This document shows, in pieces, positions 212 through 16,021 of a stretch of 16,021 bases of DNA. The stretch's first letter is position 1. The number at the start of each line of letters is the position of its first letter. This DNA is from Bugula neritina. Its lineage: Eukaryota; Animalia; Bryozoa. Below the pieces are notes generated by a model. It was not told the origin of the DNA and made no database searches. It saw only the letters and a list, made by a program, of their open reading frames with translations. Location of the stretch: contig CAXIUT010000234.1 in assembly GCA_964035545.1 (NCBI GenBank), positions 1 through 16,021 of the forward strand. The letters run 5' to 3'. The translations under genes were made by a program, and so were the position numbers.

Positions 212-995
212 ATGAGTTTCAAGACCCTCTCAGACTATAAAAAAGACTGTACTTCTTAATCTATTTAGAAAAAAAAGGAGACGACAAGAAAAAAAATACT
301 ACTTCTTACACTGGAGGATAAAGCAGTGGATTGGGAGTCATCAATCCAGATGTTGCAGGTATCATGTAAAAAGCATAAAAAAATTCAAAGTAACTTCTCT
401 TTTATCTAGATCTCCAGAAGAATACTCTAAAGAAGAAAAGGGAAAAGGAGGTAATGTGGTCAAAATAACTTTATATTAAAATGGATATACGATAGATGAT
501 GGAGATTTCAATGACTACAGTGACCCTAAAAACAAAGAGTTTATGAAAAAACTAAATGAAGGATATATTCCACCTGAACTAAGAAAGAAATACCCCAATG
601 GAGAGCTATCGGTTAGTTTGAGTGATAAGACAGGATAGAAATATATTCCACCACCTCCTCCAGCATATGTTTAATTTTCAGGAAGTGGAGTTTCTTTATC
701 AGAGCCAGCAAAATAGACAAAATTTGCTAAAAAATCAAAAGCATGTTAAAATTTTATCTTACAACCCAACAAAAACAAAGAAGTCACCACTATGAGAGTG
801 CGTCTATCTAACGGAACTACTATAACTATGTAGGCGAATCTCGATTCATCACTTCAAGAAGTGCATAATCACATAGCGACAGTGAGTGGTTTATCTTCAT
901 TTAGTTTGGTAGGAGGGTATCCACCGAAGCCATTGGATATGAAGTCGACAGTGGAGGCAAGTGATTTGGCTGATGGCACATTGATTCAGAAATGA
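212..995 (+). CDS. SEP + UBX domain p97/Cdc48 cofactor (p47/p37/Shp1 family), 247 aa; introns 249-268 and 390-409
   Basis: Spliced frame with TAR=E reads MSFKTLSDYKKDEKK...SYTGGESSGLGVINP. SEP domain: VKITLYENGYTIDDGDFNDYSDPKNKEFMKKLNEGYIPPEL. SHP-box-like FSGSGVSL. UBX domain: TTMRVRLSNG...GGYPPKPL...LIQK, TGA at 993-995. No N-terminal UBA seen. Confidence 0.93.
249..268 (+). other. 20-nt spliceosomal intron
   Basis: gtacttcttaatctatttag; removal joins ATG 212 to the YTGG frame. Confidence 0.9.
390..409 (+). other. 20-nt spliceosomal intron
   Basis: gtaacttctcttttatctag; removal joins the upstream frame to the SEP-domain frame. Confidence 0.9.
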
Positions 996-1024
996 TCTTA
1001 TGATGATGATAGTGATAATAATTA

Positions 1025-2053
1025 ATGAATAAAAATCAATATAGGTACTAACCTCATATATCTAAGATTCAAGCTAATTTAAAAGAAATGAAATAATCTG
1101 TAAATGATTATCTTAAAAAGAATAATAAAGATGGAGTTCCACCTATCTTGAGGGGAAGACATTATCTTCTATTAGATACTATTAATAGTCTTAATTCTAG
1201 TAAAACTATCGATAGTCCTAAAAAATTAATCAAAGATATAAGCTCATAAAATATTCATCATCAAATCACCTAAAACGATAAATTTTAGCCTTTAAGAGGT
1301 ATTTGTTAGAAACAATAAAAAAATAAAATTGTTAAACAAAAAAAAATAGTTACTGGCAGCAATAGCTTCTACAATAACTCCATACAACCTGAACTCAATT
1401 GTCTTCTACCCAATATATGTGATCTAAAATTCATTAAAAACAAAAATATGACCCCAACTGTTAACTCGAAACGGTAGTTAAGTAAATAGAAAAGACTTAA
1501 CTAAAATAGAACAATGTTGAACTAACAAAATTCAATAAGATAGAACTATCTGAATAACTATCAGAGTATAGATTTGTGTGAGCAAAGTCATTTGATAAGT
1601 CCAAAGATAGACAAAAATACATTGAAAGGGACTAAAAGAAAATGGATATCTAAATCAGTCAATAAACAATATCAATAACCATACTACTTTGATAAATTTT
1701 CTGACTATTATCCTAAAGCCACCATGAATAGCTATATCTAAAACAGTAAAATCATAAAATATGATGATAGCTAAGTAAATATGAATGATTCGTCTGCTAT
1801 CATCGAGGAGTTGGGCAATGTGCAGCATGTGAATCCTCGTCGGAAAGTATTTCAGAAGATAGGGAGTTAGCTTGATAAATCATTGAAATATAAGAATTCT
1901 AGTAAAAAAATAACTATTTCTACTTCTCAAAAATTCAAAATGAAAAGTAAGGAGAGTAATCCTGAGATGGATGGGCAGAGGTTTGATCCTTGGTAGAACT
2001 AGTAAATCGGTAGGCGAGAAGATGAGTTTATTTTGGATAATGATATCTATTGA
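1025..2053 (+). CDS. Hypothetical K/N/S-rich protein, about 342 aa (alternative start ATG 1088)
   Basis: TGA-free frame from ATG 1025 (MNKNQYRYEPHISKIQANLKEM...) to ...FDPWENEEIGRREDEFILDNDIY, TGA 2051-2053. It fills the gap between flanking genes. No recognisable domain. Confidence 0.75.
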
Positions 2054-2074
2054 TCTTTTTACAGTCATAAAACA

Positions 2075-5000
2075 TCAACTATAAAATTTCCTAACATACT
2101 TTGCTCTATTTAAAACCAGTTCATAGTATATTTTGAACTGTTTTTTGAATTTTTGGTGGGTTAACTATGTTTCAAATACTGGTGCTATGGGTGCTCCTTT
2201 GATCTTTGAAAAACATTCAAGAATTTTATGTTTTTCTGGAATAACATCATTGGTAAGTAATGATTAAGAGTTAACTAGTTTGAGTAGTCTATTGAGTTAT
2301 CTTTATTTTCTCTTTATTTAGATAGAATCATTGCCTTTGATTTTATTGAATTCGAGGATATATTTCCAACGATATGAGGCTAGCTGTTAGTAGTTGTCTC
2401 TGATGAAAAGAGATAGTTTTAGTTCGTATTCTTTTCTGGCTGTACAGAATTCTTTCCATTGGACGTGAATTATATCTTTTAGTACTTTTGTGTATATTTT
2501 TCTTTACTAGGAGACCCATCTTTCAGTTTGTTTCATGTTATCAGGGATGTTTATTTAGCTATTTTTTGGTTTGAAAAAGAAGTCGTAATGATGAGAATAT
2601 AGCAAGATATCAACTATACCTCCATGTGTACTTTTTCTATCGAAAGGTCGATAAAAAGTCTCAACTTTCCAATCGCTTTTACTTGCTTCAACCCAACTGA
2701 TACTTTTCTTAAGCTAGCTTTAAAACCTTTTCAAAACAGGATAATCTTATCTCTATGCCATCAATTTATTCTCTTTCAAAGTTGACAAAGTGACTGGAAA
2801 TGGAAGTTTTAGTTTACAAATAGGGCTTATACTTAGTACTGTTTCTAATTTGACTGGTTTATGTTTTTATTGGATGGGTTTGAAGTTGAGTTCTTATCTG
2901 CATATCAGTGGACTTTTATTTTAGAAGGATGGAGTTGGTTTGATGTATAATAATAAAAATTTCTTCCATTGACATTTCATATGAAACATTCTTTATCTTT
3001 TTTAGTTGCTCAGCCATTTTCCTACTTTCTATATTTTTCTGGTTTTTATCCAAAGACTACCTAATTCTTGACTAATTTTTTTTCTTAAAGAGTATTATAC
3101 CAGAGATGATATGATATTTTTTCTTAATGATGATATTTTGTTTGATTTCCATTTTTTCATGGCATTTCCTATAACTTTTTTGATTAGAGCAAATGATTTA
3201 GGTTTTTATTAACTTAATGTTTTAAGTATACTTAATGCCCTTTGTTTATATAATAGATTTTTCATATTATTAGCTACTTTATTAAAACATTTTTTACTAC
3301 TTCTTTATTTCATTTTTAATTTTTTTGCTTTATTTAAACTAGATATAAATAAAGAAGTGATAAATGTTTTTTTGAAGATTTAAGATATAGCTACAATACA
3401 TTGATCTGGTTCTGGTTAATTGATAACAAGTGATTTATGGGTAGATCTTTTTTTAATACATTATTAATATTTTTATTGTAATAATATTTATTTTCTCTAC
3501 TGTGCTGCATCTCTTCTTTATTAATAACTTAATAATTTATGAGTTTTATTGTTGGTAGGCATAGTTAGCTTCTTTTTATTACTTTTTGTATGTTTTATAT
3601 GATTGTAATGATCTCTTATTATTCTATCTGCTTTTTATGTTTAAACTAAATATTTTATAGATTATCTAGCACTATTGACAGTTCTATGTCTTTATTTTCT
3701 TTTAATTGTGTGTTTTCTTTTTATTTTTACCTAGTTTTCTATCATATTTAAAGGTAATTGAGGTCTAGATTAGTTTAATATATTTTTAAATACTTTTTAT
3801 TAATCTTGAATATTTTAAAAATATCTTTACTTTCCTGCTTTATAACTTATTAATCTATCAATATAATCTTCACTATTTTTAGGTAACTAAGGAGTACAAT
3901 TAGCACTTTTATATTTTAAGTGTTTTCTTGATTTTAGTTGAGAATTAGGTTTACATGTTATTTTATTAGGAAATAACTTGATATTGACTTTTTTTAATAC
4001 TTATGAGAAATAATAAGTTTACTATTTATTTAGATTTCCTTTATCTTTAGAAACTAAAAGTATTATTGAATTTTATTGTAGTTAAAAATCAATTATTTTA
4101 GTAGACTTATCTTTAACTATATGATATGGTTAGTGATAAATAATGCCTTCTTATCCACCTATTATCTCTGACAATCCTTTTCCCCATATATACAACTAAT
4201 TTGCTGAAGTAAGTCCACCAAATTTACATTAGTATCCTTTGATATCAACAAATTTTAATTTTTTAGTATCAACTAGAGTAGGCTCCAGAAGATGTTATCC
4301 TTTTAATGTTCTTTCATTATTATATAAGTACATGCCCCATTAATAAACATTCCCATCGATTCCTAAAGCTATTGAATAACTTGTTGATGCAAAAGCTTTT
4401 ACTATTGGCTCTTTTATTTCTATTTCTTATAATGACTAATAGAAACTCTAAATAGAATTTATATTTACTTTGTTGTATTCTTTTAGTCCTAAAGCCAAAT
4501 TTTTACATCCCCAGCCGAATAATCTGCCCTACTAGGTCCATACTAGTCCGTGATATTTACCCAGACTCATTCCTTTTGGAGTTTCAATGATAGATGTCTT
4601 CTTGCCGATTGGAAAACGAATCAACTCTTAATCTTTTGTGTTTAATTGATATAGTTTTACTGTGTTTTAGAGGGTTTTTACTGAGCTGTAGTACCATATT
4701 GATCCTTATTTTATGTTTTATTCGACATAATATGCGTCGATAAGTCCTGAATAAGTTCCATTTGATAATATAATTTTTCTTAATTTTTCACTCTTAAACT
4801 CAGGTTTACTAGTCCATGTCACAAGAATGATATCTTTACGTTTACTTTCAAATAATAGTTGCCCTTCTCCTAAATAAACCCTTTTTGCTTTAACTTTTAT
4901 CAGCTCTGTGAGGTTGACAGGCTGTCTGAAAATGTTACCAACGACCCATAGACATCCCTTCTCTATATTGCTGCATTATTACAATCAATTAAGGCGATGA

Positions 5001-5175
5001 TTCCGTTGTAGCAGGCCATGGCTGATGGAATTTTATTTTCATTTGAGTGTTATTATTGATCTTAGTTGATTTTTAGAGGACCTGAAGGAGCAGTGAATGC
5101 TTTTATGGTGCCGGATGGTTGTCCAAGAATGAGGATATTGGGTTTCCAGTCACAGTAGAATGGTTGTTCTATCAT
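2075..5175 (-). CDS. RCC1-like repeat protein with long basic/coiled-coil C-terminal region, about 1026 aa; intron 4963-4982
   Basis: One 20-nt intron gives a continuous frame of about 3 kb. RCC1-type repeats: SLGKYHGLVWTEEGRLFGWG, FASTSYSIALGIDGNVYEWG, KFGGLTSANELYIWG. Two further 21-nt in-frame intron candidates (4311-4331, 4448-4468) cannot be excluded. Confidence 0.85.
4963..4982 (-). other. 20-nt spliceosomal intron
   Basis: gtaataatgcagcaatatag on the minus strand; without it the ATG 5175 frame hits TGA shortly afterwards. Confidence 0.88.
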
Positions 5176-5208
5176 AATAGAAATTAATTTATATTAATAT
5201 TATGAAGA

Positions 5209-7141
5209 TCATGATAAGTATTGAATCAAAAAGCTCTATTTCTTTAGTTACATATTTTAATTTTGTATTTTCTAAAGGATTTATTCTTTCAATTCTTTGT
5301 TCAAAATATCTTTTTGTTTATTTTTATTCAGTGAAGAATCAAGTTCAATGTTGAGGAACTGTCTGTAGCCTGGTAAAATCGACTATCTTAGTATCAATGC
5401 CTGCTTTTATTAGTTACAATTACATGATGCATGAAGTAAGAGAGAGGCAAATACTTGATTTCCAAAGGAGTTGAAGTTGAAATTATTGATTAAAGTTCTG
5501 ATTTGTTCGATTGATAGTACATTGTCAATGATAGTTAGTGGATGATTCAGTACCTTAGAAACAAGTTATTTGAGTATATCTTGTTTAATTTGTGAGTAGT
5601 ATTAGTCTTCGAGAAGAAACATTTAAAGCAAAGTTGAAAGAATGTAGTTGGGATTGATTAAAATAACCTTTTTTTGTATATATTGACTGATCCATTCAAA
5701 GACATGCTATAAAGAAGCTATTTGTTATTCAGAGATAGTTTTTCCGTTTAAATCGGATAAAGTATTGAAGAGGAGAAATGAACAGATGAGTTGTGCTTTT
5801 TATCCTGGAGTATTTGATATATTTTATACAAGTTGCCAACTTTGTCCACCGATGAATCTACAGAGAAAGACGACTTGGAATATATACTAAGGATTAATAT
5901 TCCCAACTACTTTGAATGAATTTTTATACTAATGTTTATATTGAAGGAGTCCATAGTTGTCTTTGATTTTGAATGTTGACATATGATTATTTATTTCTTT
6001 TGATGATAAGTTTATTGATAAACTAATACAAAAACTTCAAGTACTCTAGAAGTTATTAAAGATCTCCACATTTATCAACACTTTTATAAGTAGTAAGCCA
6101 ATATCCATCATTTTCTGATTCTTCTAATAAAGATAGCTAAACTATAGCATCAATACTTTTTAGCCAATTATTGATTTGAACATCTTAATCATCTTAAGAG
6201 AGGGATAGTTAAATAAAATTTAATGAGGTTTTGATATCGTTTTTGTCTTTTTATTAAATATCAAGTATTTTTATTCTAGAAATAGCGATAGATATTTTGC
6301 TTTTTATTTACGATTTAGTTTTTTTATTGATGTAATCTTTCATGTTTGTTATCACCTCAGCAAGTGACGTACAGAGTTAGAGAAATACACTTTTATAAGA
6401 AGTCGAATTGACTATTTTTAGAGAAAGGAATAATATTTTTATAAGTTATCGGACAAGTTGACCTACATGCAGAGGTACCTTATTTACATAAATGAGTTAT
6501 CTTGTCTTAGTTGTAGCTAAGTTAGTAATAGCTTTCATCCAGTAGTCTAGATATTTACCTCCTGTCACTTGAGATTGGTTGTTTTATGAACCTACACATA
6601 AAGCTAACTTATTAAAATCTATGAATTCTTCAGAAGTATTTTAGGTGTATTCAAGGTTTTAGTCTTTAAGATTTAGTTTTAGGTATTATTTCCAACTTTA
6701 ATTTTTTACCGCTTAATTCTCTTATGATATAGTTTTGTTTGAGAATTATTATTCTTCTTTCTTTTAGGCTTTAGTTTTAACAGGATTTGCTTTGTTTTTA
6801 GTTAGTTTGCTCAGAAAGACTTTTGGCAGTTCGAATTGTAGAGATTTGATGGTTTATTCACGTTCAGATTGACTCATCTTATCAATAGCTTTCCAATTTT
6901 ATTAGTCTATTTTCCCTAGTTCCTCTTCTTTAAGTACATCTTTGTCATTTATAGAGTGTAAAAAGCTCTTGGGAAGTAGCTTTTCTTCTTGGAATTTTTC
7001 TTCAGATGGCTCATTGGTTGAAAGTTGATTTTTTTCAATGATGCAAGGTGCAATAGGAAAGCCATTATCTTATTCTTTCATTTTGGACCGAGCTTCTTTG
7101 ATTCTTTGTTTGAAGAGTGACACTTTCTCTTAGCCTTTCAT
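5209..7141 (-). CDS. RPAP1: RNA polymerase II-associated protein 1 (RPAP1/Rba50)-like, about 636 aa; intron 6023-6044
   Basis: MKGEEKVSLFKQRIK...NGFPIAP..., then KIDEENWKAIDKMSQSEREETIKSLQFELPKVFLSKL, which resembles the RPAP1 N-terminal motif (I.EEN..L..MS.EEI......L...L....L..L). A helical repeat-like region follows; TGA at 5209-5211. Confidence 0.65.
6023..6044 (-). other. 22-nt spliceosomal intron (inferred)
   Basis: gtacttgaagtttttgtattag; the only GTA...AG of typical size I found that connects the upstream and downstream coding frames. Confidence 0.7.
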
Positions 7142-7170
7142 TCCAATTTGCTATATTGAGCTAAAAATTA

Positions 7171-7290
7171 ATTATAAGTTAATGAATCATTTTCTTTTTA
7201 AACTTGAATATTTATAAGTTAATCAGTCATTTTCTTTTTAAACTTGAATAATTATAAGTTAGTCAATCATTTTCTTTTTAAACTTGAATA
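7171..7290. repeat. 40-bp tandem repeat, 3 copies (7171-7210, 7211-7250, 7251-7290)
   Basis: Unit is wttataagttartsartcattttctttttaaacttgaata; the last 24 nt are identical in all three copies. Confidence 0.97.
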
Positions 7291-8520
7291 CTTGGAACGT
7301 GTATCTCCATTAATGGTGATATTCATGGTGCTTTAACTCCATTTTGACTAGTTTTCATTCGATTTAACACTTTTCTTTCAATCTATTGGATCTTTAGTTT
7401 GGCAGATGAAGAAGCCCTTGAAACGATTTCTTCTCTAGAATGATTTCTGGATCTATTTTTCATGAGAGAATCTATTTACCCTGTTCTTTATTCAATGTTA
7501 TGGGTGTAGGGGATGAGAGACCTTTTCAATATTTATTCTATGTCTCTTTTTTATTTATGACTAGAATTCTATTTGATGGGCTATATATTTTTTTTAAAGA
7601 AGTGATTGATATTTAAATCATTTTACTATTGCATTACTCGAGGGTACATTGAACTTCTTTAATTTTTGATTATTTATTTTTATTTATGATCAGATTTTCT
7701 ATGAATTAGACCTGCTAATTTATTTGTTTTTAAAGGAATATCTGTTGATTGAGTTTATTGATATATTTTTATTTCTTTTGTAGGTATATGACTTCCATAT
7801 TGTCGATTTGATTTAAAATATCTAATTAGGTTAATTATTTATTTTTTTATATGATTTTTTATTGATAGTTTTATTACTTAACCATTTTATCTAGATTTAT
7901 TGATTATTATTTCCAAAAAATGTGTTTTAGTGGTAGTTGTTCAACATCTTATCCCAGAAGATACTTACTTAATAAACTAATATTTAGTCTGCTGTAAATA
8001 TTAAGACAACTTAGTACTTAAACAAGCATTGTTTTAGTGAGATATAGTTGGCTTTGAGGATAGAATTTATTTAAACATAGTTTTAGTGTTTACAAATCAT
8101 TAATAACGTTATTTCTTTGTATTTATATTTATTTATAACTTTTTAGTGCTACTTTTATTAGTTAGAGTATTCCTTATTCTGCTTTATATATTTTTTCTGA
8201 GTGAATAGATTTAGGATTAGCAAACTGGAAAAACATATTTTGGAAGAGATCGATATCTAGTTTAGAATATTTATTGAATCCAAAATATTTGTTAATAAAT
8301 TTGAGATCTTTCTTATCCAAAACTATATCTTTTCTTTAAGAAAAGCATAAAGATCCTAAACAAATATCTACTAGCATTCTAGATGATCCACTACTTTAAA
8401 CAATTCTGATAGTTACGATAGATCAATTGATGCTTTGATTTGATCTATTTGTAGTTAGCTGGTGATGATGGTGGTGATGAGGGTGGTGAATGCGGGTGGA
8501 AATGTAGGTTATTCGATCAT
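7267..8520 (-). CDS. Degenerate EF-hand-like protein with 2-3 unresolved frame discontinuities (possible pseudogene, assembly indels, atypical introns or recoding); 3' end at 7267 or 7323
   Basis: ATG 8520 reads MIEEPTFPPAFTTLITTIITSELQIDQIK...LFKVVDHLECEEIFVEDLYAFLKEK. Protein-like sequence then continues one base back (DIVLDKKDLKFINKYFGFNKYSKLDIDLFQNMF...). A third frame carries KRDIEEILKRSLIPY...SREEIVSRASSS. The resemblance to ciliate tandem EF-hand proteins is by eye only. Confidence 0.55.
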
Positions 8521-8580
8521 TTTCTATTAGTTTTTATAATAATGGAATAATAAATTAATATGATATATTTGTGCTGATGA

Positions 8581-8808
8581 TCACTATGGGGCTAGGTCGT
8601 AGATGAAGGACTAGAATAGATGAGAAGGTACTAGTTTTGCGATGACTGTTTTATAGAATTAAATATCTTTTTTTATTTTGTGTTTGCTTTGTTTGAGGTA
8701 TTATGTTTTGATGTGGATGTCTTGAAGTTCGTGTTCCATTCTTGTTACTTTTTTCTAGCTTAAATATCTAGTTACATCTACTATCTTTTAGGTTTAGTTC
8801 ATGTTCAT
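8581..8808 (-). CDS. Small hypothetical coiled-coil protein, about 75 aa (start could be 8802, 8808 or 8832)
   Basis: MNMNETEKIVDVTRYLSEKKVTRMEHELQDIHIKTEYLKQSKHKIKKDIEFYKTVIAKLVPSHLFESFIYDLAPE, TGA at 8581-8583. Confidence 0.6.
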
Positions 8809-8855
8809 TTAATCAACTATTATAACCCGCATAAAGTTGTATATTCTTATAAATA

Positions 8856-9280
8856 ATGAGTAAGTAATAATCTATCTTTCTTACCCAGGGATTGGCTGCT
8901 TCTCAAATGAGAAAAAGAACAGTGCAAAATTATATTGCTGATACTCAGAACAATGAAATCAACTAGATTCGATAAAAAACAGAAGAACTGATAGTAAAGG
9001 TTCAATAGATAAAGCCGCATGAGAGTACTAGTGAGTATCGCAAGTTGAGACGTCAGATGAAGCAGGCAAAATCCAGGCTGAATCTTAGTCGATAAAAATA
9101 TAGAAATGTATTGGTATTGATTTGACATTTGCTAAAAAATGTATAACTAACGAAGGAATGCCTTGTTATGATAATATTTTAAATGTTTTGGAGAAATAGG
9201 AGAAGTAGAATAGATAGTTGTTGGAAGAGTTGGTTAGTTTGGAGGATAGAATGGGTAGAATTGAAAATTAGATTGGATGA
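8856..9280 (+). CDS. Small hypothetical coiled-coil protein, about 134 aa; intron 9025-9044
   Basis: MSKEESIFLTQGLAASQMRKRTVQNYIADTQNNEINEIREKTEELIVKVQEIKPHE, then after the intron IETSDEAGKIQAESES...ILNVLEKEEKENRELLEELVSLEDRMGRIENEIG, TGA at 9278-9280. Confidence 0.7.
9025..9044 (+). other. 20-nt spliceosomal intron (inferred)
   Basis: gtactagtgagtatcgcaag; reconciles the two halves of the ORF, but is more GC-rich than the other introns. Confidence 0.6.
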
Positions 9281-9467
9281 TAGTTATATTATTTATGTCA
9301 TTTCTGTCTTAAGGGGTCATTAGTAGTAAAATTTGATAGATATTGAAAAATGAAAAACGATATTAGTTACAAACTTTCATTAAGGACATATTATCAAATG
9401 ATAAAGTTGTATTTAATCATTTTGTTTTAGTTAATAAAATATCAATTTGAATCATAGTTAATAAAAG

Positions 9468-10288
9468 ATGTTGTTATCAAAACTGAAACAAACCTTACCC
9501 CTTATCTCAAGTACACTTTATATCACTAAGAAAGTCAATTTTCATTTGGTCTTATCACTTAGTATAACTAGCGTGCAAACAAAAAGCTTAACATCAATCA
9601 TTCTATTCCTGACAAGCATAGTTTCTTTGTGACTCCTGCTCGACCTGGAAACTTTGGAGATCATATTGATTTTAAAGCTAATATTGATAATTGGTTTGAC
9701 TAGAATAGAGTACATAACTAACATTAAACTGATATCAGAAGAACACAAATTTATATGCTGAGTGCAGTCTATTATGCTGCTCTGGCTAATTTAGCAAGAC
9801 TCTATGCTGTGGCTGCCATTGGCCGACTAAATGGATGGACCAGATATGATAGAAATACATATTTGGAAGTCGATATCTCAGAAATTCCTCCAGGAGAAGT
9901 ACTGCAGATAGTATGGAATGGAACTCCTGTTTTTATCAGAAGATTAACTCAACAGTAAGTCTACCAGGAAGAAAACTAGTATCCAAAGGCAACTCTTCTT
10001 GATCAGGTGAGTGAAGTTTGTCTGAATACAGCTGGTAGTACTCAGATATTGGTTTGTTCTGCAGTTTGTACTCATTTAGGATGTATCCCTATACCATATT
10101 TGGGAGCATATAATGGTTGGGTTTGCATATGCCATGGTTCTGTTTATGACAAATTCGGACGGGTACGTCAAGGCCCAGCTCTTCTGAATCTTCCCTATAT
10201 TAACAATTCTCTGTATGAGGATGGAACATTGCTTTGTATTGAAGAGATGAAGTTTCCAAGAGAACCATCAACTCGTTTCTGGGCATGA
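9468..10288 (+). CDS. UQCRFS1: Mitochondrial cytochrome bc1 Rieske iron-sulfur protein, 266 aa; intron 9511-9530
   Basis: Rieske boxes CTHLGC and CICHGSVYD, plus GPALLNL and WNGTPVFIRRLT. The N-terminus MLLSKLKQTLPLISKSQFSFG looks like a targeting peptide. Track ORFs 9755-9958 and 10007-10288 are one frame joined through TAA/TAG. Confidence 0.98.
9511..9530 (+). other. 20-nt spliceosomal intron
   Basis: gtacactttatatcactaag; joins ATG 9468 to the Rieske frame. Confidence 0.9.
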
Positions 10289-10388
10289 TTGTGATAAATA
10301 TAACCATTATTAGATGTATTTTAGTGATAAATTATTAGTCATAAATGTTAGTATGATCAGTAAGTTATTTATATATGAGGTAGATGTA

Positions 10389-13049
10389 TCATAGTTATGT
10401 AAAGATTCTTTTTCCAACTATTTATTGAAATTTGAAGGTAGGATTTGTCTGGATCATTGGATTGCTTTGGACTGTTAGTTTTCTAATTAATTATTTCTTA
10501 ATTGTCTATTTTTGAAGACTGTAATATGTTTTTCGAAAACTTTAGTTATTTTATAACTTATTAGATCGATTTACTGATTCATCATGAGTTTATGTCTTTA
10601 GTTTACTTCTTTTCTAAAATCCTAAGGTAGTATTTGAGACTTATATTGGATTTATCAAAAAATTAAGATTTATTATTTTGGCTGTAGCATTCGGGTCGAT
10701 TTATTTTGTTGTATGAGGATGAGGAGGAGAAGGAGAACTAGTCATCGTGTAAATCTTCTTTCTAACAAAAGGATTCTTTCTGACTCTTTCAAGAATAGGT
10801 CTTTTTCTTGACTATTATAGAAGTTATTCATCAAGTTAGGTCATAAAAGATCCTCTTTTTATTATTTTCATTCCTTATTTGGGTATCTTTTAAGCTTATT
10901 CAACTACACTTTTGATAGATTTTATTTTTTTTATTAATTTTTTTTAACCATAAACCATAGTCTTGATTTATTGAACATCAATATCATCTTCACTATTCTA
11001 ACTATCTGATTTTCCTTAACTTAGCTCATCATCACTGCAATTGACTCTAGATTTATTCTAATCAGTTATTTATGTGATTAATTAGTTCAAAATAGAATTT
11101 TTCTTTTACATGGGAAGATCAAAATTTAAATTTATGTTAAGCTTTGATTTTTTACCTGCTATATTACTTTTATTTCTGAAAGAAGAAGAATGAGATCTTC
11201 TAGCTATTATATTTTTACTTTTTAAACGATTTTCTCTTTATTTTTTTCTTTTCTAGCGAGTCTATTCTATCTATTTTACTATCATCCAATAATCAAAAAG
11301 AGATTAACATACTTTCTATCCTAATAAAATCCATTTTTAAATAGAAAAAGGCGTTGCTTATTTGACTTATTGATTAAAATAGCTTCCATTTGATGTTTCA
11401 ATAGTATAAACAAAGGGGATATTGAACTATCTAAGCAGCACTGCTCGAGCAGTTGAAGTTTTATATTGACTTACTTTGAAACTACAAGAATAATATCGAA
11501 AAAGTTCTGTTCTTTTCGATAGTAATTTAGGTATTAACCTGCTTTCATAGTATTTGGAGTGAGTAAGAGGGTATTATGGTCCATAAGTAAATGCATTTTT
11601 TTTAACTGTGTGTCCATGAAAATCAAGAAAGAACTAAAATTTCTTCTGATAGATCCATCTGCATTTCTGTAAAAATATTTTCATTTGAGCGACTTAGACA
11701 AACCAACTAGAATCTGGACTAATAAATTATCGATTGAAGTCTCTGCCTGATAATCCTGTTCGATAGTTGCCCATAACTACTCCATCGATATTGAACATGG
11801 GTATTATTTTGAAGATATATTTGTTTCTGAGTTCTTGTGATTCTTGTGAATAGTTGCAAAGCCATTTGATGAATCCTTAAACAACATGAGATCCGTTGGC
11901 TTATCCTGGATGAATGCGACCCATTACGCAAATTAATCTCTTATCACTATAGGTTTTTTAGTGTTTATAGGCATTTTAAGTTTAAAGTACAGAGTTAGTG
12001 ATAGTTAATAGAGGAATTTTGAATCCTCCCAGACTGGTGCAAAGATGTTACTAACTGATGATATTTCTTTATCTATTTTGAGAGACAGTTGTTTTGATAA
12101 ATTACGTTAGATTAGTAAAGCTATAAGGAGCACAGTAGGCTATTTCTAGTGTATCATTTTGATATTCTGTAGATATTTTGAAAGAAAGATTAAATAATTT
12201 ATTTTAGTCATCCATTTATTCTTTACCAAATAAAACTTCAAATGTTTTTGATCTTTTCTTTGTGTATTCGATATTTTATCCTTTTTGTTACCATTTTATT
12301 CCTTAAGATTAGTGCTATTTATGCGAATAAACGTATGGTTTCATTCCTCTGGTGTAAAGAGTTTTTGATTTTTGAAAATTACAGATATTTATCTTATATT
12401 ATGTAAATGCTTTGATATTAGTTATTTTGAAGTAGTACCATTGCAAGTGTCCTCGAGTATTGGCATCTACTCTCATAAAACAATCATATTCGTTCGTATC
12501 TACCTTAGTTATATCATTAATACTTTGAAGACGGCATCTAGGTTGCCACTTTAGAATACTGAGTCGAATTTTATTTATGATTTTTTAGTTTATGGACTCA
12601 TGCCTGTAAACCTGCGATTAGTAAGTGTCACTTTTTGTTATCCCATATAGTTGTAAGGAAATTATACTTTATAGACTTTCCATGCTGAGTAGGTGGTATC
12701 AAAGTGAGGACCGAGATATAGTAGTTCTATTTCTGTTGGTTTAGTTCTATTGTAGGCATTGAGTGCTTATGCGATGAGATCTTGGTGGAAGGTGAGAGGG
12801 ATGGGTTTGGATAGACTGATTTTAGGCGCCCACCTAGGTAAGAAGGAAGTACCCTGTAACCATATCTGGATGTAGTGAGTATGATTTTTATTTGATTTAC
12901 TGTGGGGGAGGAATGAATTTGATCATTTGTTCTGTGACAACTAATTTATGTTCGATGGTTTCTTCTGTTTCTACTTTGACTAAATCTATTTTATCTTCTT
13001 AGTAGTTTTCAAATCCATCTTCGAAGGCTTGACTGGCGCATCGCTCCAT
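10389..13049 (-). CDS. Cytosolic carboxypeptidase (M14D, CCP/Nna1/AGBL family; tubulin deglutamylase-like), about 873 aa; introns 12504-12523 and 12834-12852
   Basis: Family motifs in order: FDSVFESGNL, NEYDCFMRVDANTRGHLQWYYF, LYTRGMKPYVYS, AYCAPYSF, LCTSLGG, GRIHPGEANGS (zinc HxxE), FKIIPMFNIDGVVMGNYR, GRDFNR, DFHGH..KKN.F.YG, STARAV...YTIETS (catalytic Glu). A long low-complexity C-terminal tail follows. Confidence 0.96.
12504..12523 (-). other. 20-nt spliceosomal intron
   Basis: gtattaatgatataactaag; joins SGNLDAVFK to VDTNEYD. Confidence 0.93.
12834..12852 (-). other. 19-nt spliceosomal intron
   Basis: gtacttccttcttacctag; joins the ATG 13049 frame (HPDMVTG) to WAPKISL. Confidence 0.8.
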
Positions 13050-13131
13050 TGACTATTTATTATTATTATAAAACTTTGAGTATGATTATTTGACAAAGAT
13101 GTTAATTAGATAAATATAAATTGAATGAGTT

Positions 13132-14069
13132 TCATTTTTTAGTTGTTTTCTTTTTGACATTCAATGGGGTTTAATGTTCTTTTGATGATAGTATTTTGTG
13201 GTTGTCTGTTGCCCAAATTTGTGAATTTTAAAACATGTTTAAATTTTATTATACGATGTTGATGTATTCTTGGCAGTGGAGAATTCCTCTTAATATCTAT
13301 TGTAATTTGACTTTGCTGCTAGGATTTATCGTTTAGGCATCTCTGAAAAAGTTCTATATATTCTATTCTGTGACAAAGATTAGATTGTTGTGTTGTTGGT
13401 TGAATAGTTATTTTTATTTCATGATGTTTAGGAGTGTTTGTACTAAGACTGAGAAGGGAGGTTTGCTGAACTATTTATTATTTTTTATTTATTCCTTTAC
13501 TATTATTTTATAGATTTGTAAAAAATCTATTTATTCTTCTTGCTAGAAATATGAAGATAGGGTTTATATATATTCTGTATAAACCATAAATAGATAGATA
13601 GCTTGTTGTATTTTTTTAGGTTGTAAGGTTTTATACATTTGCTGTGAATCTTATTTAGGCAAAAGAAGAGAAACTGACTTTTGTATAAACTATTTAGGGA
13701 AATCACTGCATAGCAAACGAGATAGTTGATAGTAATCGAGTCCATTTCTTTGACTTTGGTCTATTTCGAATATTTTTATAAAGTTATAGAGGAAACATAT
13801 TTTGCAAATGGTTGATTTGCTGAATGATCCATAAGATTTAAGTAGAACATTTTATCCTTTGTTGCACTGATTGAGATATTATGATAGAACTTGATTTCCA
13901 CTGATTCCATTCTAAATGCTTATCAATAAAATACCTTTTTAAGTAATATTTTTGTTGCTTCTGATAGCAGCTAGTATAAATGTACCGCTTATGCGTAGTC
14001 ATGGTATGAATTCAGGTTGCGAGAGAGGCTAGGTTTGCCTACGTAGATAGCGTTTATTTATTTTTTCAT
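13132..14069 (-). CDS. CSTPP1: CSTPP1/C11orf49 (UPF0705)-like tubulin polyglutamylase complex regulator, about 304 aa; intron 13912-13934
   Basis: LSEATKILLKK...VLSEYLNQCNKGENVLLKSY...CFLYNFIKIF...LDYYQLSRLLCSDFPKEFIQKS...IYLFMVYTEYIE matches my recollection of C11orf49 (EYF.SV..G.HIL.RE; EYH.LL.LLCPDFP.EL.QK; FYYSEF). Needs HMM confirmation. Confidence 0.75.
13912..13934 (-). other. 23-nt spliceosomal intron
   Basis: gtattttattgataagcatttag; contains an in-frame TGA, and removal restores the homologous frame. Confidence 0.85.
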
Positions 14070-14090
14070 AATTTAAATTATAAGGGTTAA

Positions 14091-15864
14091 TCATTTGATT
14101 GAGATGTAGACCTTTACATGATCTGATTATTCAGTGTAGTCTAATCTGTTCTAGCGACACCATTGGGATACTGTTGGCTTTAAAATGCTTCTGTTTCCTC
14201 TAGAGTGGATTCCCTTGCCAGTCATTACGATCAAATTGGCTGTCCTTTTGCCTCGTACAGTTCGGATCTTCACTTTTTCATTACCTTTCTAGATTAATAG
14301 ATACCCATGTTGGCTTCTGAACAGATCATTCTTTGGATGGAGTCCATGAGTTAGCTGATTTATTGTTCTCTCCAGCCGTGGAGATCGACATAGAGAGGAT
14401 CATTTTTTATCATATTTTGGATTATTTTGATCCTAGAGGCTGCTGATAGCTTTTCAATAAAAGGTTCATTTATACTAAATAAGTTTAAATGTACTTGCTT
14501 ATGCGATCAAGTTCTTTTCTTTGGTTATTACTTTTTATTTTCATTTTAGTGAGTTGAAAAGCTTGTCTTAGTTTGTAAAGATGATCGATTTAATCTCTAA
14601 GTTGATCTAGAGATAAATGTTTGAGTTCTTCATCGATTTATTCTTATTTTCTATGTCCATTATGATGTTTTTTATGACTGCTGATGGTTTATGATTTATG
14701 TACAGTTCTTATTTATTTAATAACTTTTTGTTTTCTTTTAGATTCGTAGTGTTTCTGATTTATATGATTATTACAAGTAAAAATTATCGAGATCTGTTGT
14801 AGTCTCCTGCTAGAGCTTTATATATAAATTTTAAATCGATAATAGGGACATCTTCAAATTATTTATGCAGACTGATAAGATCTTTTTATGAGTTATACTT
14901 GTTATCAACATTGAAAATGGAAACTTAGTTGTTTTTTTATCTGGCAAATTTAGGAAGAATGCTTTTAGATGGTGTAAATAGATGTTATTTTTCTTTTTTT
15001 ACTTGATTTTATTGTTTGATTCGATCGATTATACTCTTTTGTTAGGTATATCCATCACCTATATCTATATTATGATGTACCTAGGGAGGGATAGTCTTCT
15101 TAGAGTTGTTTTTACTGTTTGACTTGTTTATTGATGATTTATTAAACAAATTGTTGGATTTGAGCATACAATGGTGAAGTAGAATCAAATTAAAAGTCAT
15201 CAAAATTACTTAATTCTTATCTGAAACCAACGATAAAGGTCTGTTTAATAGTGTTACATTAGTCAACAAAGCTATTGATTTCTAGCATTCCTACACCTTG
15301 CTCCTTTTGATCTTATTTTATCATCTAGGCTATTTCTTAAAACAATTCTTCAAATTATCTACCATTTATCTCTTACTTCAAAAGGGTATCGAACACTTCA
15401 CTCATTAGGTTGTTGGCTGTTTATGAAGGAGCTGATGAAGTACTTTTATCTTATGATTTCTTTTTTGGTATTTGTTATATTTATTCTAACTCTTTTTTCC
15501 ATTATTATTCCTCTTAGTTGTCTGGAGGCAATAGTAGTAATTTATGATAGGCAGATTCTTTATCAAAGTTACTTTATTGAAGTTTTTTAAGAATTGTGCC
15601 TTATTTGTAGTCTGAGAGGACTGAACAGAGTTCTTTAAATATTTTTTAATCGTTTTGCTTGTCATGATTGGTCGTTTATTTCACTTTACCTCTAGATTTA
15701 TGTAGTTAGCTAGTTTGCTATATTTATTCTTGGATGTTGTTTGACTCTGGTTGTACTTTTTTTTTGTATTTTTTTCCTTTTTTGTTGGTGGGTTATTCTT
15801 AATCAATTTTTTTGTTTTTCTTTGATACGAGTTGGTTTTCAAATAGAAGTTTATCATCATTCAT
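14091..15864 (-). CDS. CUE/UBA-like + C-terminal Smr domain protein (Cue2/N4BP2/NONU-1-like endonuclease), about 563 aa; introns 14285-14304, 14475-14494, 14755-14774, 15059-15080
   Basis: Smr motifs YVDLHGWREQE and LIVMTGKGIHSRGNRSILKPTVSQWCREN. CUE-like LISLHKEFEDVPIIDLKFIYKALAGDYNRSREFL. UBA-like IFKELCSVLSDYKEGTILKKLQESNFDKESAYHKLL. Also EEDYPSLG. Spliced length of 1692 nt is a multiple of 3. Confidence 0.9.
14285..14304 (-). other. 20-nt spliceosomal intron (skips an internal TAG at nt 16)
   Basis: gtatctattaatctagaaag; only the 20-nt version links DLHG to TGKGIHS in frame. Confidence 0.88.
14475..14494 (-). other. 20-nt spliceosomal intron
   Basis: gtacatttaaacttatttag; frame-restoring. 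Confidence 0.88.
14755..14774 (-). other. 20-nt spliceosomal intron
   Basis: gtaataatcatataaatcag; frame-restoring after the CUE-like domain. Confidence 0.85.
15059..15080 (-). other. 22-nt spliceosomal intron (a 16-nt version ending at 15065 is also in frame)
   Basis: gtacatcataatatagatatag; gives EEDYPSLG-DG. Confidence 0.78.
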
Positions 15865-15938
15865 AATTCAAGTTTAATTATATCGATATTTCAACTATTA
15901 ATATTTAAATCAATATTCTTATACATAGAACAATAGAA

Positions 15939-16021
15939 GGGGTTGGGGTTGGGGTTGGGGTTGGGGTTGGGGTTGGGGTTGGGGTTGGGGTTGGGGTTGG
16001 GGTTGGGGTTGGGGTTGGGGG
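15939..16021. repeat. Right telomere, (TTGGGG)n
   Basis: GGGGTT tandem array to the end of the window, oriented as the complement of the left array. Confidence 0.99.

Follow-up and report, generated by a model that had tools for sequence, protein, structure and literature searches.

We identified the 16,021-bp stretch of DNA analysed here (the window) as a complete ciliate macronuclear minichromosome with C4A2/G4T2 telomeres on each end. In the nuclear code that it reflects, UAA and UAG very probably both specify glutamate, with UGA retained as the only stop, the assignment listed as NCBI translation table 30. Based on established knowledge, the tRNAs for the reassigned codons would be tRNA-Glu-like, one with a UUA and one with a CUA anticodon, and the release factor eRF1 would be specific to UGA alone. 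The source organism is most likely a sessilid peritrich.

Molecule and gene content

The telomeres, (CCCCAA)n at positions 1-70 and (GGGGTT)n at 15939-16021, were identified by direct reading; C4A2 is the repeat type of Tetrahymena and other oligohymenophoreans. Between them lie approximately nine genes, in which in-frame TAA and TAG are abundant. For Pfam searches only stop-free translated pieces served as queries, and X-masked translations were used in scripted alignments. A p47-like SEP/UBX gene (212-995, plus strand) was recognized from stop-free pieces that match SEP (E 2e-15) and a UBX-like domain. Its frame from 216 to 992 contains three TAA and three TAG codons; lacking an alignable relative, the gene lies outside the codon-by-codon comparison.

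A large gene (2075-4984, minus strand) and an RPAP1-like gene (5209-7186, minus strand) are both conserved on a syntenic scaffold, L001, the former with 369 and 179 bits. In Pfam, the RPAP1-like gene has a weak, marginal match to TPR_RPAP1 (E 0.075). The TAA codons that the original prediction placed in an IDEEN motif of this gene are present, as ID-TAA-TAA-N at 6896-6910. The genes for a mitochondrial Rieske iron-sulfur protein (9347-10288, plus strand; Pfam Rieske) and a cytosolic carboxypeptidase of the M14 family (CCP; 10389-13109, minus strand; Pfam M14 and CCP N-domain matches) follow. The CSTPP1-like gene (13132-14094, minus strand) carries a name taken from the original prediction; Pfam searches gave no support for the gene names CSTPP1 or RCC1. 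The last gene (14091-15867, minus strand) has multiple exons and a terminal Smr domain, the latter from a weak Pfam match. Frame changes in its alignments imply candidate small introns.

The frames themselves are informative. TGA-free frames of 969 codons (the large gene) and 769 codons hold 51 TAA plus 14 TAG and 46 TAA plus 13 TAG, respectively. With TGA at about 2% of the codons in all six frames, the calculated probability of a 969-codon TGA-free run by chance is about 1e-9. Long frames that bear TAA and TAG and lack TGA are thus far beyond chance. Across 4,155 window codons aligned in coding frame, TAA is the commonest glutamate-type codon (221), followed by GAA (134), TAG (55), and GAG (27).

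TAA and TAG at conserved glutamates

All of the codon positions cited in the original prediction were verified. In the CCP gene, the glutamate of the HPGE motif, a zinc ligand, is encoded by TAA (11901-11903, minus strand), within the reading ..RIHPG-TAA-ANGSH. The corresponding codon is GAA in one relative, L014, and TAG in another, L001. A bridging piece of L014 aligned its own HPGE to that of the solved carboxypeptidases 4b6z, 3k2k, and 8v3m. The glutamate of FESGNL is likewise TAA (12551-12553, minus strand; F-TAA-SGNL) and is GAG in L014; we infer a 20-nt intron after this exon. Strain variants in the CCP gene are mostly synonymous and include a TAA to TAG change at 10836, within the species. 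The exception among the claimed positions is LLR-TAG-F (11424-11438), where the TAG was expected to match glutamate in homologues. The codon is present, and relatives have Ser and Asn there.

The Rieske gene contains in-frame TAA at 9719, 9725, and 9956 and in-frame TAG at 9701 and 9977. As had been proposed, the TAA at 9956, in RRLTQQ-TAA-V, falls on a glutamate, that of RT..E; among 92 Rieske homologues, 91 have E at this position. This deep sampling of standard-code homologues covers part of the Rieske protein only. At the other four positions the closest relatives have E. For TAG 9701 (NWFD-TAG-NR, 9701-9703), also assigned to glutamate in the original prediction, eight relatives have GAG or GAA and two have TAA. 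In a further relative, L017, TAG itself occupies the invariant Rieske glutamate.

Similar exchanges occur in genes with less certain names. The CSTPP1-like protein is 56-61% identical to its relatives, and of the six codons opposite the TAG at 13692 in its DFPK-TAG motif (13690-13704), three are TAA, two are GAG, and one is TAG, consistent with the glutamate proposed there. In the Smr gene, the acidic run in which TAA was said to be mixed with GAA and GAG reads TAA GAG GAA TAA TAA (15502-15516, minus strand). When this gene is compared with three related loci (L009, L014, and L015), TAA or TAG swaps repeatedly with E.

Codon substitution patterns

We tallied codon partners across 12 distinct loci of syntenic metagenome relatives; similarity at the DNA level produces alignments in every frame, so only the best frame per locus was counted. 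TAA is paired with TAA (75), GAA (71), GAG (45), and TAG (35), and rarely with CAA (8) or CAG (8). The partners of TAG are GAG (31), GAA (25), TAA (22), TAG (8), and CAG (7). In a likelihood test of TAA, E is favored over Q by 228 nats and over K by 317 nats; for TAG the margins are 93 and 144 nats. These differences overstate the strength of the evidence, because the relatives in the tally themselves use this code and are not independent of one another phylogenetically. As a control, leave-one-codon-out assignment was correct for 54 of 55 sense codons.

Glutamine for both codons (table 6) is the commonest ciliate reassignment, and a few TAA and TAG codons are indeed opposite Q or K; others at variable sites are also opposite non-glutamate residues. 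Lysine for UAA with glutamate for UAG, as in Oligohymenophorea sp. PL0344, and tyrosine for both are the related options. Mesodinium reads UAA and UAG as Tyr. The likelihood deficits of Q and K argue against these readings, as does the position of Tyr outside the top five for either codon, and TAA encodes invariant catalytic and structural glutamates. We consider the chance that any of the three applies to be negligible, and the window alignments rule out glutamine, lysine, and tyrosine.

Deep conservation and codon substitution patterns are thus two independent lines of evidence that both TAA and TAG specify glutamate. The evidence for TAG, anticipated to be weaker, is thinner than that for TAA, yet still decisive. 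Glutamine, lysine, or a split meaning of the two codons had been named beforehand as the outcomes to look for; both codons resolve to glutamate.

TGA as the stop codon

All gene ends seen in the window are TGA. This stop is kept in eight relatives for the Rieske gene (10286-10288) and in six for the CSTPP1-like gene (13134); including the Smr gene, conservation of the terminal TGA extends over two to eight relatives. Conserved coding sequence of the window was free of in-frame TGA. Sense use as in table 31, with UGA read as Trp, was rejected: at gene ends TGA is opposite TGA, and only one of 39 TGA alignment pairs involves TGG, located at a frame change.

One TGA deserves comment. At 14001-13999, flanked by conserved blocks, it falls in the reading frame of the CSTPP1-like gene, as might be expected if glutamate-encoding UAA and UAG were combined with a context-dependent code in which UGA is also sense (Trp), or in which UAA and UAG also terminate. 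The codon sits within a poorly conserved 72-nt GT..AG stretch, in which the TGAs of relatives occur at shifted places; this stretch is a candidate intron, which would account for the in-frame TGA. The remaining TGAs inside alignments are at gene ends or at frame changes of small introns. Context dependence of this kind is therefore quite unlikely, and UGA appears to be the only stop in the window, with no sense use.

Source organism

A diverse and widespread environmental clade has this code in common, with Rieske identities of 69-91% and GC contents of 23-42%. Three related loci (L010-L012) share the Rieske gene with the window without synteny, and a Rieske protein 82% identical occurs in NCBI assembly GCA_041443065.1. 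Clusters of Rieske and uL23 homologues comprise only metagenome proteins, a probable contaminant in a Gracilaria transcriptome, and proteins 53-54% identical from the nassophorean Pseudomicrothorax. Together with the C4A2 telomeres and a tiny intron, the sharing of the code by this clade is what a large group already known, for instance the sessilid peritrichs, would show. UAR=Glu is known in Peritrichia, with a single origin there (PMC10553269, PMC11687900). A literature search found no paper that describes how macronuclear chromosomes of peritrichs are built or what their telomeres are.

Alternatively, the organism could be a non-peritrich, in which case the reassignment would have a second, independent origin in ciliates. 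Oligohymenophorea already contains a non-peritrich lineage with UAG=Glu, PL0344 (PMC10553269). No rRNA, tRNA, or eRF1 gene was found in the window or the related loci compared; the window was scanned for tRNAs and against Rfam, and 14 related loci were scanned for tRNAs. For the ribosomal protein uL23 of one relative, the closest homologue with a name is uninformative, being the probable contaminant in the red-alga transcriptome. Against a second origin are the fit of the clade to a known group and the existence of publicly available peritrich genomes (PMC13685798). We regard a second origin as very unlikely, and a peritrich source as much the more likely.

Implications

Translation of this genome requires table 30, as the standard or bacterial code fragments every gene in the window. 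Table 6 would miscall about 6.6% of residues as Gln, TAA and TAG together accounting for 276 of the 4,155 aligned codons. For the evolution of genetic codes there is nothing new here unless the organism falls outside Peritrichia or UGA has a dual use elsewhere in the genome. It is unlikely that either a non-peritrich source (a second ciliate origin of UAR=Glu) or genome-wide context-dependent UGA=Trp alongside UAR=Glu applies. If true, the latter would represent a code with no dedicated stop that is based on Glu rather than Gln.

Comparison with known codes

The window resembles table 6 (Tetrahymena, Paramecium, and Oxytricha) in the sense use of UAR and in UGA as sole stop, and it has the same telomere repeat as Tetrahymena. 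The difference is in the residue, which is Gln in table 6 and Glu in the window. Blastocrithidia (table 31) also reads UAR as Glu in its nuclear code. However, it is a trypanosomatid with UGA=Trp, whereas the window, a minichromosome of a ciliate, has C4A2 telomeres and TGA conserved as stop. PL0344, an oligohymenophorean ciliate, shares with the window UAG=Glu, UGA as stop, and ciliate affinity of oligohymenophorean type, but reads UAA as Lys (PMC10553269); in the window UAA is Glu, given the 317-nat deficit of K and the presence of TAA at invariant Glu positions. The UAR=Glu code is already known: it is the peritrich nuclear code of table 30 (Vorticella, Opisthonecta, Carchesium, and Campanella). 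With these organisms the window shares UAR=Glu, UGA as the only stop, and a ciliate macronuclear chromosome, and there is no difference in code between them.

Chromosome architecture and reading frames

The 16,021-bp window is a ciliate macronuclear minichromosome, complete from telomere to telomere, as telomere repeats occur at both ends: (CCCCAA)n at 1-70 and (GGGGTT)n at 15939-16021, both read directly from the sequence. It has a GC content of ~29% and carries ~9 genes, most on the minus strand. No description of multigene minichromosomes in peritrichs was found in the literature searched, and tRNA and Rfam scans of the window identified no tRNA genes or Rfam families.

The longest TGA-free frames comprise 969 codons (with 51 TAA and 14 TAG) and 769 codons (46 TAA and 13 TAG). 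Computed from the ~2% share of TGA among codons in all six frames, the chance probability of the 969-codon run is ~1e-9. Stop-free pieces matched Pfam models for SEP (E 2e-15), a UBX-like domain, Rieske, Peptidase_M14, the cytosolic carboxypeptidase N-domain and, weakly, Smr. Two TGA-free, TAA/TAG-rich frames from the frame scan, at 1016-2050 (+) and 7326-8580 (-), have no family assignment; around them, conservation with the related metagenomic locus L001 is confined to 7709-8344 and 8626-8916. At 14091-14094 (minus strand), the sequence ATGA combines a candidate ATG start for the following gene with the TGA that terminates Smr, so these two same-strand genes would have no intergenic spacer.

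Glutamate at conserved protein positions

The original prediction was that TAA and TAG encode glutamate, and every codon that it cited is present in the window. In the carboxypeptidase gene (minus strand) these include HPG-TAA (11901-11903) and F-TAA-SGNL (12551-12553), and in the mitochondrial Rieske gene RRLTQQ-TAA-V (9956-9958) and NWFD-TAG-NR (9701-9703). Also present are ID-TAA-TAA-N (6896-6910), LLR-TAG-F (11424-11438), DFPK-TAG (13690-13704) and the run TAA GAG GAA TAA TAA (15502-15516, minus strand).

When the stop-free C-terminal piece of Rieske was used in a word search, at least 120 matches were obtained, and those listed were aligned to the window protein with TAA and TAG masked as X. 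Among them, E is found opposite TAA 9956 in 91 of 92 aligned sequences. The column at TAG 9977 is variable overall; the closest relatives among the matches listed have E. The closest of these, L003, has E codons opposite TAG 9701 and TAA 9719, and again TAA opposite TAA 9725. The zinc-ligand glutamate of the carboxypeptidase HPGE motif is written TAA in the window, GAA in L014 (a second metagenomic relative) and TAG in L001, and the FESGNL glutamate is TAA in the window versus GAG in L014. The HPGE of a stop-free L014 piece aligns with that of solved carboxypeptidases (4b6z, 3k2k, 8v3m), with E-values that are weak because the query has just 46 residues.

Codon substitution among relatives

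We compiled 18 loci from contigs encoding Rieske homologues and from a single scan of metagenomes that used a conserved segment of the gene at 13.1-14.1 kb as query; several (L001, L009, L014, L015, L017, L018) share many-gene synteny with the window. All frames were translated with X at TAA and TAG, the best-scoring frame alone was retained per region and locus, and four redundant loci were left out, giving 12 distinct window-aligning loci. Opposite window TAA these have TAA (75), GAA (71), GAG (45), TAG (35), GAT (22), AAA (20), CAA (8) and CAG (8), and opposite window TAG they have GAG (31), GAA (25), TAA (22), TAG (8) and CAG (7). In the reverse direction, the relatives' TAA and TAG fall mainly opposite window TAA, GAA and TAG. 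At sites with at least three sense-aligned relatives, E is the majority residue at 13/26 TAA and 8/12 TAG sites, and any other residue at two or fewer.

Likelihood assignment, using an empirical substitution table derived from the same alignments, identified Glu as the best residue for both codons. Gln is second (behind by 228 nats for TAA and 93 for TAG) and Lys trails by 317 and 144 nats, gaps that overstate independence because the relatives share both a code and ancestry. When each ordinary codon was treated as unknown in turn, 54/55 were correctly recovered. Despite the kinship of the relatives, the direction of this alignment-based result is not in doubt. The glutamate reading is thus upheld: neither codon aligns mainly with Gln or Lys, and the two do not differ. 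As shown by these comparisons, TAA and TAG occupy glutamate-equivalent positions and behave in evolution as synonymous with GAA and GAG.

The chromosome is also present in public-run contigs at ~98-99% identity. Read in the assigned frames, these contigs differ from the window mostly by synonymous changes at third positions, including TAA to TAG at 10836. TAA leads the glutamate codons among the 4,155 coding codons that were aligned (TAA 221, GAA 134, TAG 55, GAG 27), so ~63% of glutamates are written with former stop codons. In-frame TAA and TAG are far fewer in the higher-GC relatives L003 (42%) and L014 (38%), suggesting that their use tracks AT content.

Stop codons and introns

Gene-end TGA is conserved in eight relatives for Rieske, six for the CSTPP1-like gene and two for Smr. 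Some TGAs inside alignments lie at frame changes in the multi-exon Smr gene and the carboxypeptidase, which are explained by putative small introns. One, a predicted 20-nt GT..AG intron after the FESGNL exon (~12480-12500), would restore the frame and join ..FKV to DTNEYDCF... A 72-nt GT..AG stretch (13970-14042, minus strand) containing TGA and TAG, poorly conserved between conserved CSTPP1-like blocks, is probably also an intron, much longer than the carboxypeptidase one. Among TGAs inside alignments of the window to relatives, no case of UGA as a sense codon was found.

Synteny

Gene order is kept between window 2087-14070 and L001, and between 11166-15867 and L014, at just 43-52% residue identity over aligned codons, indicating that synteny in this clade is old. 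The scaffolds sharing it derive from lake and other metagenomes. The tubulin-deglutamylase-type carboxypeptidase (CCP) adjoins the CSTPP1-like gene (10389-14094), an adjacency that recurs in L001 and L014. The latter name comes from the original prediction, CSTPP1 being a tubulin polyglutamylase complex regulator; Pfam gave no support for it in the window gene (13132-14094). Separately, the uL23 of EukProt entry P0181, labelled Gracilaria changii (a red seaweed transcriptome), is 73% identical to that of L003 and is probably an epibiont ciliate contaminant.

Source lineage and comparison with known codes

A peritrich source fits the window on indirect evidence. The window contains no rRNA, and named homologues are uninformative about the taxon. 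Its telomeres are of the C4A2 type, which occurs in oligohymenophoreans, and the same code is found in diverse environmental relatives (Rieske identity 69-91% among the matches listed, GC 23-42%). The tiny carboxypeptidase intron also fits, since peritrich introns are reported to be short with a narrow length distribution (PMC13685798). An independent origin of UAR=Glu, in a non-peritrich source, is very unlikely. The literature gives the reassignment a single origin within Peritrichia, whose oligohymenophorean ancestor had UAR=Gln (PMC10553269). By analogy with ciliate stop-codon reassignment, GluRS would charge cognate tRNAs bearing UUA and CUA anticodons, and eRF1 would recognise UGA alone; neither the tRNAs nor eRF1 is encoded within the 16,021-bp window.

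Several other codes were rejected: table 6 (UAR=Gln), given the 228- and 93-nat deficits of Gln; that of the oligohymenophorean PL0344, as UAA in the window is not Lys; the Mesodinium code (Tyr); and the Blastocrithidia code, given that UGA is a stop on what is a ciliate minichromosome. Significance beyond table 30 would arise only if the organism were not a peritrich, or if UGA had a dual use. The window code, UAR=Glu with UGA as sole stop, is identical to the already known peritrich nuclear code (table 30), in which UAR is reassigned to glutamic acid (PMC11687900).
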